Source: Blastocystis sp. Blastoise
Taxonomy: Eukaryota; Protista; Bigyra: Opalinata
Reading direction: 5' to 3'
Length of the DNA: 64,000 nt
Assembly: GCA_039096225.1 (NCBI GenBank)
Contig: JBBPEB010000013.1
Location: 1,922,001 to 1,986,000 of the forward strand
How positions within the stretch are numbered: the first letter of the stretch is position 1; every line of letters starts with the position of its first letter. The translations under genes were made by a program, and so were the position numbers. The notes beneath the pieces were generated by a model. That model was not told where the DNA came from, made no database searches, and saw nothing but the letters and a program-made list of their open reading frames with translations. This document shows positions 35,219-40,687 of this stretch, in pieces.

Positions 35219-38200
35219 TTAGACATCCAGTTGTATAGTATTTCCATGTATATTTGTATATACATTTTCTTTATTATTATTATTATTATTATTATTATTA
35301 TTATTATTATTATTATTATTATTATTATTATTAACTTCTCCATCTTTTTCTTCTTGGACTATTTTCGTTCTTTTATTCTCATCCACATTCATATCTCCAT
35401 CCCCGTGGGAATCATTCTTATTATCTAAATCAATTTCTCCTTCTCTGACACTTTTAATTGAATTAGTTTTTTCTTTTACAATCTCTTTTTCACCTTTCCC
35501 CGTGGGAATATCTCCTTTATTATTCATAGCTGAAACCTCATCAGAAAATTTTATTCGTGGTGAATTCTCATGAGAATCAATGTCTATATCTATAGTATAT
35601 ATATTATAATAAATACTCACGGATATATATATATATATATATATATATATATATATAATAATTTTATCTATATACCTTGTTCTCTTGAATTCTTTTGTAT
35701 TACGGATGATTCATTCTGATTGGATAATTCGAGATGCGTCACAGATAAGTTACTATTTGAGAGAGAATGACGATAAACTGGCTCCTTTTGTTTCTTAGCA
35801 CGTGACATGTTGACGTGATCTGATTGTGTTTCCGTGTTCTTCAAAGCTATAGAAATAGTATATAATAATTATAATATAATAATAATAATAATATTAAATA
35901 ATAATAATAATAATAATAATAATAACTATATATATATATATACTCGATATAGAGTCAAAAGAATATGAAACGATATTATATTTTTGTTGATAATTATCTG
36001 CAATAACAGGATATGGACAATCTATAAATATAATATATATATAATATTAAATATAATACATATATATACATGATGGAAATGATGTTTGTTTATATATTAA
36101 GGAAATAACATAATTTCGTAATTCAATTCGTGTCATATAATAACGTAAATCAAGTTTTTTTTCAGGATTATAATTATTTTCTTGATATCGACTTAAAAAG
36201 ATTTCAGCACTTTTCAAAATATGTAAGCCACAATCATTATTATTTCCTTGATAAATTGACTATATATATATATATATATATATATATATATATATGAATA
36301 TAAATACAAGTATTTTTTGAGAGATAATGCAATCTGATATATTGTCTATTGAATTATGTGTATATCTTTGTATATAGCCCTTTAAGTAACTATATATAGT
36401 TATGTAATAATATATAGAAGAGTTAGAGAATAGTAATAGTAGTATATATATATATATGATACTAAAATGAATATAAACATATATAGTGTAATATTAATAA
36501 TAAAATATTTATATACGTTTTTATAGAGTTTTCTATAAATTGCTGACGGTTGTTTGATACAGTATCAATATAATACAAACAACACTATATATATATATAT
36601 ATATATATATATATATATATATGATATACTTTTCTTTTCTCTAAAAGATTTGCATCTGAAAAATGATCTATATATATATATTAAACTATATATATATATT
36701 ATAGATGTATATACTAGTAATTGAGCAATCATGTAATAACTGATTTAAATGACATAATATAATTATTCTCCAATGACCACTTCTATATATATATATATAT
36801 ATATATATATATATATATATATATATATATATATATATATATATATATACCTATAAAGTGGAAGAAGAAGAATTCTTTTTCTCGATACAATTTCATAAGA
36901 GAAAAATGGATCTATCACCTATATAATAATAATAATAATAATAATATATATATATATATATATATAATAACATGTAATAATAATAATATATAATAAAACA
37001 ATATATAAACAATACAATATATCATAATATATAAACAATATATATATAATAATATATAAACCAAATGATATATAACTATATATATACATCTGTTTCCATT
37101 CCTTTTACGATATTTAATAAAAAACACGGGGAAACAGCAAATGCATCACATTGTTCTATATTTATATATTGATGTTCAAGAATATAATTCTGTAAAATAG
37201 CCAGTAAACCGCGAATAATGACCGGTTCAGGCACAAATGCCATATCAGCCACTTTAATCTAAGATGAAAAACAGAAATAATGACTGAAATATATATATAT
37301 ATATGTTATATATACAAGTGAATTATAGAGTAGAAGGTCTTCTTTTGAAATATTATTATCTTTATATATAATAAGAAAATTATGAAAATAAAAATATATA
37401 CTTTGTTCTTTAGAAGAAGAAGATTGTACATTTTGTACTATATATAATATAATATTAACTAATAATTGTAAACATAAATATACGATTAAGTTTATTAGTA
37501 TCTGTTTTTTCACGGTTATCTTCTATTTCCATATCTTTCTCTATATTAATAGATGTATATATATCTTTCGTACTATCTTTATTAATACTATTATTAAGTA
37601 ATGAATCAGTAGGAATAGAAGAAGAAGGAAGAGGTATAGAAACGGATGATTCTAGAGATAAAGATGAATGGTCTTGTAAATCAGTATTCCCGTGGTTATT
37701 TGAGGTGTCCTGATGAGGTTGAAAGACATAGAGAGAAGATACAATATCTAGATTAAAAGAATTATGGTTATTTTCTTCTCTTAAGGAATCACCAATAGGT
37801 TTTCGTTTAGTTGTATATATATTTAATTCATGATTATCTGTGAAGTGTCTTTTTCCTTGAATTATAGATGTATTTAGAGGGCTATTATTATTATTATTAT
37901 TATTATTATTATTATTATTATTATTATTATTATTATTATTATTATTATTATTATTATTATTATTATTATTATTATTATTATTATTATTATTATTATTATT
38001 ATTATTATTATCTATAATAATATTATTACTATCATTATTTATCTTATTATTACTATCCTTATTTATCTTAGTATTATTATTATTAATATTAATATTATTA
38101 TTATTATTAGAGGAAGAAATAAAAGTAGATGTTTCATTAGAAGACAGTAAATTATGTGGAGGATTTTGTTCTAGAATATTCTTGTTCGATGTCGAATTCG

Positions 38201-40687
38201 ACGATATGGAATGAACAGTGTCATCATGTGTGTCATTATTCGTATCTGTAGAAGCAATTAATTGTGTATTATTTGTATTTAATAATGAAAAACCAGTTGT
38301 TATAGGTTCATTGGTAACTATATTATTATTATTTCGTTTCTTTTGTCTTGTTGTATTCTTTAGTTTCTTAAGCATAGAAGAATCACAAGGAAAAGTAATT
38401 GAATTACAGGATTTATGATTTAGTATTGTATTTGAATTTAATAAATTAAGAGAGGAATCATGGCTATAATCGTGAATAAAACAATTTGTAAAAAAGGAGT
38501 ATAGATTCTGATCTACGTCTTCTTTCTGAGGATCATAAGGAATAAAATCACGAATATATTCATTATTTGACTGGAGATTTCCTAAAGAATTAAGGGGAAT
38601 AATTCGAATAGAAATATCTTTGATTTTATTATAACAGTAATACCAATAATCGGGAGAAGTCTCTTCTTTTGTATATGTATAAATAACTTTTGCAATATGA
38701 ATACAGAAACAATTGTGTTTAAAGAGGTCGCACGTGCATGAGAGAGGATTTAACGTAACAATAATAGGATTCGAATTCTTTAAATTTTCATCACTAACAA
38801 TAAATTTATTATTATTATTTGATATTTTATTATTTGATATATTATTATTATCTAAGATATTATTATTATTATCTTTATTATTATTATTATCTTTATTATT
38901 ATTATTATCTTTATTATTATTATTATTTAAAGGTATAATAGTAAGTGGTTTCTGGAGGTCATTTTCTATAATATGTATATACGAGAGAAGAGAAGGATAA
39001 GAAGAGAAAGACATATAAGAATGAATATGAATGGAATTTTGATGATATATATTATTTTCCATATATGAAGGAAGAAGTGATATATTTAATCGATTTAATC
39101 TAAATAAGGGTGTTACAGAAGTAACGTCATTTAATAACGTATTTGATTTCATATCTTCATTGTAGAAATCATTTATTATATGATGAATTGAATATATAGG
39201 ATTAAAAAGAGACTCAATACGTTCAAAAAATTGGTTTTTATTATTATGATAATCTATATCATTTGTATTTATTGTATATATAGTATCAGAAATCAAAGGA
39301 GTAGTTCGTAGTGACATGCCATTTGAATTCATTTGATCGTAAAAATATGGAAATACAGTACACGAAGGAAAGTAATGTTTTAATATAGAAGGATTCTGGG
39401 AATACTTGTTACTGTGAACAACTAGATTTATATTGTCTTTTAAACCTATATATATATATATATAATGAAATGAAAAACAAGTTATTATAACAGTATAATC
39501 ATTATTAATTAGTAATAATAATATATATAATAATGTTAATAATAATAATAACATATAGTATAAATAAAATATAAACATAATAAACAATATAAACAATATA
39601 AACAATAGAATAAAACAATATATAAAACAACATAAATATAATCTATATACCACATAATTGTAGATAATAAAGGAGATAATTTTCACATGAAACACTATTA
39701 GTTTCTCCTTGTAAGCCATAGATTACGGTATACATTCTATTATTACTGTCTTTCACAGATATAGTATATAATAAGAAATAGTCAATACTATTCGTATAAA
39801 TATCTTCTATATATAAAGTATAATTATATTTATCCATTTTTTGTAAATAGTCAGGATAGCAAACACATAAAAACTTAAATATATTATTATCATCAATAAA
39901 TATTCTATATGATATATTCATATATGTTTTTATATATTCCAATCTTAATACTATATTCATAAATTGTTCTGAATCTCTACCAAATAATAATCTTCGTCCT
40001 TTTAATAAAAACTCACTTAATAATCGATTTGTAATTTCTTTATTTAATTCCTTTTTATAAGGAATAATCACAGTTGACGGACTAATCAAAGGATTTAAAA
40101 GCAATATACTATAGATAAAATTTTTGGCTAATGAAAAATAATTATTAGAATATTGAGAACGACTCTTTACCATAGAAGGACCTTCTATATATATTATTGT
40201 ATATTATACATAGCATAAAATTTTATAATTGATTATATTTAAGAAATATAATAGCGAAATTAAATCAATTTGATAAAATAAATATAAAATTATTTAAAAT
40301 ATATCTATTTCAATATACTCCCAGTCTTTGAAGGAACTAATTGTTGAATGTAATCAGCTATATAAAATAAAATAGCATATCTTCGGTATACAGATATATG
40401 AATTATATACCACTATGTGAGTGTTCAATATTCATGGAGTTTACTTTGGCATAAGGCTTTTCTTGACGTAATGCACAATCTTTACGTATGCTGAAATGAA
40501 TATTAAATGGACAATTCTCAAAGCAGCATGTGAGTACAAGATTTCCAGAGTTGTTTTTACGATGAATTTTGAATGGATGTTGGACGATGTAATTCGATAA
40601 CACAGAATTAAATATATCAGCATCGAAAAATCTCTGTCCTAAAACGAATGGACAAGGAGGAATTTTCTTTATATCCCTATTTGACAT
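35219..40687 (-). CDS. Mutator (MULE) transposase-derived protein: MuDR-type DNA-binding domain, degenerate DDE core, SWIM finger, C-terminal Ulp1/C48 peptidase; about 16 exons, about 1,400 aa
   Basis: DBD: FVLGQRFFDADIF...CCFENCPF...EHSH. Core: TLYIEDIY, VKDSNNRMYTVIYG...E, VVHSNKY...YFP. SWIM: CTC-x7-CIH. Ulp1: LLLPLYRSGHW, YYIDT, QGNNNDCGLHIL. All junctions I checked are GT-AG and keep one open frame. Confidence 0.85.

Follow-up and report, generated by a model that had tools for sequence, protein, structure and literature searches.

In the 64,000-nucleotide stretch of Blastocystis sp. Blastoise DNA analyzed here (the window; contig 16, positions 1922001–1986000 of a 34-contig, 33.3-Mb assembly, GC content about 22%), a gene on the minus strand at 35219–40687 joins the domains of a Mutator-like element (MULE) transposase to a protease of the C48 (Ulp1) type. 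We favor, with a probability of about 0.58, the reading that this gene descends from a MULE whose transposase was already fused to the Ulp1-type protease, and that it has been immobilised and exapted. The reading is drawn from sequence comparisons, and in particular from an open frame that has outlasted the loss of mobility: the deletions that mark the transposase core are shared with a paralog 26–34% identical, and no stop interrupts the 1330–1347 codons of the window gene.

The gene starts with an ATG at 40687 and ends with a stop codon at 35221–35219. To splice it, GT donors and AG acceptors were enumerated and combined so as to keep the frames of the conserved peptides. Two models were retained: one of 12 exons (3993 nt, 1330 codons) and a variant of 13 exons, which adds a 44-nt mini-exon at 37359–37316 (4044 nt, 1347 codons); neither contains an internal stop. 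The donors of the 11 or 12 introns all read GTAT(A/T)T, and the acceptors read TAG in all introns except one or two. The GC content of the exons is about twice that of the introns (25.4% versus 12.6%). Intron positions and phases are common to the window gene, to a paralog on contig 15 and to transposon copies of the same genome. Canonical stop codons and long introns of variable length are described for the Russian-tortoise Blastocystis isolate Rus-B (33.3 Mb, 23.1% GC; PMC12129017). The single uninterrupted spliced open reading frame announced by the first-pass annotation of this DNA is thus borne out. Family, structure and genome searches were run exon by exon; the joined spliced sequence was examined for its length, its stop count and its motif positions, and at one 50-residue junction.

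The encoded domains follow each other in the order zinc-finger DNA-binding domain, MULE core, SWIM finger, long low-complexity linker and C48 protease. Exon 1 (40411–40687) carries the start codon and a MuDR-type zinc-finger DNA-binding domain of the WRKY-GCM1 class; it matches PF03108 (DBD_Tnp_Mut) with 26.2 bits, above the cut-off of 25 (E 6.2e-6), and its zinc ligands C54, C59, H89 and H91 (C-x4-C...H-x-H) are invariant with respect to the paralog and to two transposon families. Exon 2 (39651–40184) encodes the first half of the RNase-H-like core. It has no Pfam match by itself (PF10551 or PF00872), but in a genome search it hits the paralog of contig 15 at E 5e-16 as well as transposon copies (2.5e-8 and 3.7e-7), whose full proteins match Transposase_mut (E 5e-9) and Peptidase_C48 (E 8e-13), and the MULE model with 27.5 bits, just below its cut-off of 27.6 (E 4e-6). 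The language-model features of exon 2 fall with MULE and ZSWIM1-3 clusters at 0.91, and with FAR1-related clusters too. Exon 3 (37484–39445) contains the second half of the core, the SWIM finger (about 38690–38745) and the long linker; low-complexity inserts and long Asn runs, of which one poly-Asn run spans 37883–38011, make up a third of this exon. The CxC...CxH residues of the SWIM finger (C236, C238, C247 and H249) are invariant in a four-way alignment, with a PF04434 score of 16 bits for exon 3 against a cut-off of 19.6 (E 0.0088). The union of a MuDR-type zinc domain, a MULE core, a SWIM finger and a C48 domain, as first claimed, is confirmed at sequence level, the zinc domain by Pfam, the SWIM finger by alignment and the core by homology within the genome.

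The genome contains at least two active MULE-Ulp1 families whose architecture is fused as in the window gene. One, on contigs 2 and 4, measures 16.7 kb and has terminal inverted repeats (TIRs) of 5.1 kb that are 99.8% identical; the other, on contigs 4, 33 and 26, has TIRs of 709 bp. Both have GAGA termini, target site duplications (TSDs) of 9 bp and a TIR identity above 99.7%, and both keep the IDATH/IDASH, HSDG, CxFH, NNPxEQ, SWIM and C48 residues. In comparison with these live cousins the catalytic positions of the window transposase are replaced, as had been suspected. The first motif reads IEDIY in the tblastn alignment (within YIEDIY, exon 2) instead of IDATH/IDASH, i.e. the first catalytic Asp is a Glu; the second reads HSNK instead of HSDG, an Asn for an Asp; CxFH (the CxxH motif) is gone through a deletion of three residues; and in the four-way alignment about 21 residues are missing just ahead of the third acidic catalytic residue. 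An intact DDE triad, which would have spoken for a working transposase, is therefore not present.

Two of the live elements (contig 2:178979–195660 and contig 4:61690–78056) are 99.9% identical over 16.7 kb. Their annotated proteins (P0003 and P0007) run on into a Cse1/exportin-like segment (PF08506, E 9.5e-19), which is either captured host sequence or the product of an over-merged gene model.

The contig-15 paralog (KAK8815188.1, 1095 aa, annotated as a hypothetical protein; contig 15:249797–254100) resembles the window gene in domain order and intron positions, with an identity of 26–34% and long frames in both. It is compact: a single exon covers the Asp motif and all that follows of C48, a part that takes three exons in the window gene. 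The paralog protein matches no Pfam family, its transposase motif reads FHTAN in the four-way alignment, and the His, Gln and Cys of its C48 domain are all changed to Ser; the window gene, in contrast, keeps the four protease residues and passes PF03108. No inverted repeat was found within 30 kb of the paralog. When the surroundings of the two genes were compared by tblastx, low-complexity noise alone was seen outside the gene, thus giving no sign of a segmental duplication. Both core deletions (the three residues at CxxH and the ~21 before the third acidic residue) are shared by the two genes, which indicates that the nuclease was lost in their common ancestor, before the split. The transposase was therefore dead before the two genes diverged, yet both frames survived, and this argues for exaptation.

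These observations also bear on the possibility that the gene is a non-functional relic, i.e. the last copy of an extinct MULE-Ulp1 family that decays neutrally and whose frame is open by chance. We regard this as quite unlikely. A relic would account for the broken transposase motifs, for the low-complexity inserts and Asn runs of exon 3, and for the want of a relative outside the genome and of a matching protein in the libraries searched. Neutral decay does occur in this genome: among its at least 31 PF10551 matches, which belong to several MULE families, some have 5–8 identical copies with frames of 650–760 codons and some have in-frame stops. (Mutator elements are thus diverse and recently active in Blastocystis sp. 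Blastoise.) Several traits of the window gene speak against a relic. Next to its complete lack of stops, 500 shuffles of the spliced letters contain 116 on average with a minimum of 83, and the five other frames of the same letters contain 77–254. All 11 or 12 introns have consensus, in-phase sites; the exons have kept twice the GC content of the introns despite the strong AT drift of the genome; the zinc ligands persist, as do the four residues of the protease. Above all, the motif losses shared with so distant a paralog make the dead state old, and neutral sequence would not have stayed open for so long. An ancient loss of catalytic motifs together with a long frame and the full set of splice signals is what domestication predicts.

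The C48 domain is spread across seven small exons. The last of them, with the oxyanion Gln and the catalytic Cys (QGNNNDCG; 36070–36259), scores 16.3 bits with PF02902, whose cut-off is 20.7 (E 0.0093, model positions 165–205 of 217), and its language-model features go to Peptidase_C48 clusters at 0.96. A search of the PDB with the single sequence of this exon gave noise only. A four-sequence profile of the exon, by contrast, picks out 15 C48 structures along with one chain that is unrelated; the best match is SENP8 (6e-5), Ulp1 follows at 1e-3, and the alignments lie exactly over Q..DCG, as is also the case for SENP7, SENP5, SENP2, SENP1 and Ulp2. SENP8 is a NEDD8-specific protease. The catalytic His (SGHW) is in the exon at 36715–36782, which aligns with HNHW of P0007, a Pfam-positive protein of a transposon, and the exon at 36517–36584 has the Asp motif (YYIDT), whose counterpart in the paralog is CCIYYLDS. 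All four residues (His, Asp, Gln, Cys) are thus kept, in agreement with the full C48 triad (GHW, IDT, QxNxxDCG) initially reported. The four residues are not placed with the same precision: Gln and Cys by alignment to SENP8 and Ulp1, His by alignment to the transposon protein, Asp by its motif and by the paralog, with CYDSN of the transposon copies matched to it by eye. When the short C48 exons were aligned as fragments with MAFFT, reliable placement was obtained for those with the His and the Cys alone.

Of the other exons in this half, the first C48 exon (37088–37258) begins at 37251 if the gene has 12 exons and at 37258 if it has 13; it has phase-compatible junctions and a weak colinear similarity to the contig-15 paralog. 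The next one (36851–36918) encodes the strand leading into the catalytic His and aligns with the paralog (RKRI..P.Y). Between the His and Asp exons a 38-nt mini-exon (36630–36667) keeps the frame, with consensus sites on both sides, and is the sole phase-compatible solution found there. Phase-compatible consensus junctions also flank the exon at 36308–36389, which lies between the Asp motif and the Cys motif. Two tail exons complete the protein: a basic, Ser-rich one (35676–35846) with one phase-compatible junction and consensus sites, and the last exon of the splice model (35219–35589), which encodes an acidic, Asn-rich tail and the stop. Neither of the two had a family match in the Pfam scan.

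The junction between the two halves raises the question of whether one or two genes are present. Beyond its proposed donor, exon 3 meets an in-frame stop after eight codons (37458), and an in-frame ATG at 37243 lies within the first C48 exon; a dead MULE-derived gene could thus end at the former and a separate Ulp1-like gene begin at the latter. We consider this very unlikely. The gap between the two would be about 215 bp, for a median intergenic space of 645–719 bp in tortoise isolates (PMC12129017). In-phase consensus donor and acceptor sites are available in both splice models. GenBank lists the paralog as a single fused protein, from a pipeline that demanded introns backed by RNA-seq (PMC12129017), and both transposon families are likewise annotated as fused, with an identical domain order and a mini-exon at the equivalent place. 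Moreover the optional 44-nt mini-exon of the 13-exon model (37316–37359), which lies in phase and with consensus sites between the transposase and protease parts, mirrors a 15-residue mini-exon at the equivalent place of the annotated paralog protein (P0001).

We then consider mobility. The only 100% match to the gene in the 33.3-Mb genome is the gene itself, the next match being 28–34% identical; many dispersed near-identical copies, the pattern of an ordinary transposon, were not seen. A dust-filtered self-comparison of the window revealed one inverted repeat, which belongs to a neighboring element. Searching the flanks (34538–35218 versus 40688–43559) for TIRs with short words gave matches of AT-only sequence that did not exceed the direct-strand control, and a joint scan for TSD and terminus gave 20 weak AT-only candidates versus 22 in the control. 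The gene therefore shows none of the traits of an active MULE (TIR, TSD of 9–11 bp, several near-identical copies), and the absence of TIR and TSD from its flanks, which had been noticed at first reading, holds in the self-comparison, the flank search and the TSD scan alike.

The same results weigh on the view that the gene still belongs to transposon biology, either by regulating the active MULE-Ulp1 families in trans, as a repressor or an anti-silencing factor, or as a non-autonomous element mobilised in trans through unrecognised ends. Active cousins of identical architecture do exist in the genome, Ulp1-domain proteins of plant VANDAL/KI-MULEs are linked to anti-silencing (PMC13317346), and some plant C48-MULEs move without recognisable TIRs (PMC4948706). 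This view nevertheless appears rather unlikely to us, because the gene is single-copy, neither ends nor TSD were found, and ordinary-looking coding sequence lies close by on either side (0.7 kb downstream and about 0.4 kb upstream). In addition its DNA-binding domain is nearest to that of the contig-15 paralog and 13–22% identical to those of the active Ulp1-bearing families, so that shared DNA targets are improbable.

Several points weigh against an exapted transposase-protease. Neither the SWIM finger nor the MULE core reaches its Pfam cut-off when scored singly in its own exons; the C48 domain too was scored exon by exon, its other exons being too short for Pfam, and the protease activity and its substrate are deduced from four motif residues. 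When a profile built from two exon-2 sequences was run by exhaustive HMMER search against 1.84 billion representatives, three proteins came back, all from this genome. Word-index protein searches (two regions of a 754-aa frame, and exon 2) found no relative; the first of them was swamped by Asn-rich words, and a length filter of 415–1320 aa was applied. A scan of JGI metagenomes found no relative of the gene. Two large protein libraries that contain the paralog and the cousins yielded no product of the gene itself, in searches of which two had a length filter that would leave out a product of 1330–1347 aa. In one sequencing run, whose RNA type was guessed, a fraction of 0.19 of the sampled words was present. 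The gene may thus be missing from the public annotation, which could mean low or no expression in culture. Two more tortoise isolates, with conserved orthologs down to 56% amino-acid identity, are described in the paper on Rus-B (PMC12129017). Rfam and tRNA scans gave no match. What is flagged here is probably an unannotated gene of 1330–1347 aa in a recently published Blastocystis assembly.

If the gene is indeed an exapted transposase-protease, its protein would no longer be able to cut or move DNA, while its two zinc modules may still bind DNA or chromatin. It would then bring an active isopeptidase for ubiquitin-like proteins to the bound sites, the predicted substrate class being SUMO or NEDD8 (the catalytic exon has SENP8 as its best sequence match), and act as a locus-targeted regulator of the deSUMOylase type. 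The first-pass annotation had proposed such a domesticated host deSUMOylase or regulator; the part of this proposal that stands is a single-copy, end-less gene with a broken DDE transposase and intact protease residues, and the part that does not is the binding of the TIRs of a neighboring element. By analogy with the FHY3/FAR1 pairing, one may speculate that the contig-15 paralog is a non-catalytic partner or competitor. A still more specific scheme, which we hold to be doubtful, is that the chromatin-targeted protease and its doubly dead paralog form an FHY3/FAR1-like heterodimer controlling SUMO-dependent silencing, possibly of the active MULE-Ulp1 elements; if true, this would be the first transposon protease recruited by a host together with its DNA-targeting module.

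The neighboring element lies at 43560–56490 and starts 2873 bp from the ATG of the gene. It is 12.9 kb long, with perfect TIRs of 51 bp (43560–43610 and 56440–56490) and a TSD of 10 bp (TATTTTGTTT), so the MULE with pristine TIRs described 2.9 kb away is real. The element belongs to a family of at least 13 copies in the genome and begins with GAGATAATTG, ten bases that are those of the maize Mu TIR terminus, taken for this comparison from flank-TIR chimeric primers (PMC3440606). A 19.7-kb copy on contig 20 (954633–974354) has both ends as in the neighbor and a PF10551 match inside, and no second inverted repeat was found in it; the copy of the window lacks the MULE-domain region and is thus probably non-autonomous. 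The alignment between the two copies runs 18 bp past the TIR into the flank (43542–43559; contig 20:954616–954632), which could reflect a shared target preference or a true element end further out.

The TIRs of this neighbor had been put forward as a target of the protein encoded by the gene. We rejected this candidate: the neighbor belongs to an unrelated MULE lineage, and no exon of the gene is detectably similar to anything in the transposase-bearing contig-20 copy. As it comes from another lineage, and as the DNA-binding domain of the gene is nearest to that of its own paralog, the TIR-binding idea finds no support.

Two other features lie close to the gene. Downstream, on the plus strand, a frame of 2932 codons rich in Asn, Ser and Asp runs is open at 25739–34537, with a likely upstream exon and a splice acceptor near 25870; its end is 680 bp from the stop of the studied gene, in convergent orientation. 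Just upstream of the ATG, at 41100–41800, four GC-richer islands (31–41% GC, with 8–16% between them) have the look of the exons of a small gene; they have no Rfam or tRNA (ARAGORN) match.

MULE-borne Ulp1 domains and the domestication of MULEs are both well known, mostly from plants. The plant C48-MULEs or KI-MULEs (Kaonashi, VANDAL-type) associate, like the window gene, a Mutator-like transposase with an Ulp1/C48 peptidase domain, and in some grapevine families the two stand in one frame (PMC2528002, PMC4948706, PMC13317346). But they are mobile and multi-copy, and their protease is usually in a second gene, whereas the window gene is single-copy, without ends, broken in its DDE motifs, and found in a stramenopile. 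Within this genome it is the cousins on contigs 2, 4, 26 and 33 that truly correspond to the plant elements, and not the window gene.

Domesticated MULE transposases offer the second comparison. FHY3/FAR1/FRS, MUSTANG (MUG) and animal ZSWIM1-3, like the window gene, have kept a MULE core and a SWIM finger along with the N-terminal zinc-finger DNA-binding domain; they are likewise without TIRs and single- or low-copy, and are genes of the host. Two differences appear: no protease domain is described for them in the literature searched, while the window gene has one, and they are defined by conservation across species, while HMMER finds relatives of the window gene in its own genome only. With Ulp1/SENP/NEDP1 (MEROPS C48, clan CE) the window gene has the His, Asp, Gln and Cys motifs in common. 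Its C48 domain is however very divergent and cut into seven small exons, and where these proteases have N-terminal targeting regions it has a transposase-derived DNA-binding module instead.

A domesticated gene that has lost its nuclease while keeping its protease was not described in the literature that we searched. What seems new here, as judged from the motifs, is the association of a dead nuclease and of a protease with its residues kept in a single-copy gene, beside a doubly dead paralog and live cousins. One genome thus presents three stages, i.e. live fused elements, a nuclease-dead copy with a putatively live protease, and a doubly dead copy, and this series lets one ask what the Ulp1 domain does for the transposon and which parts the host keeps.

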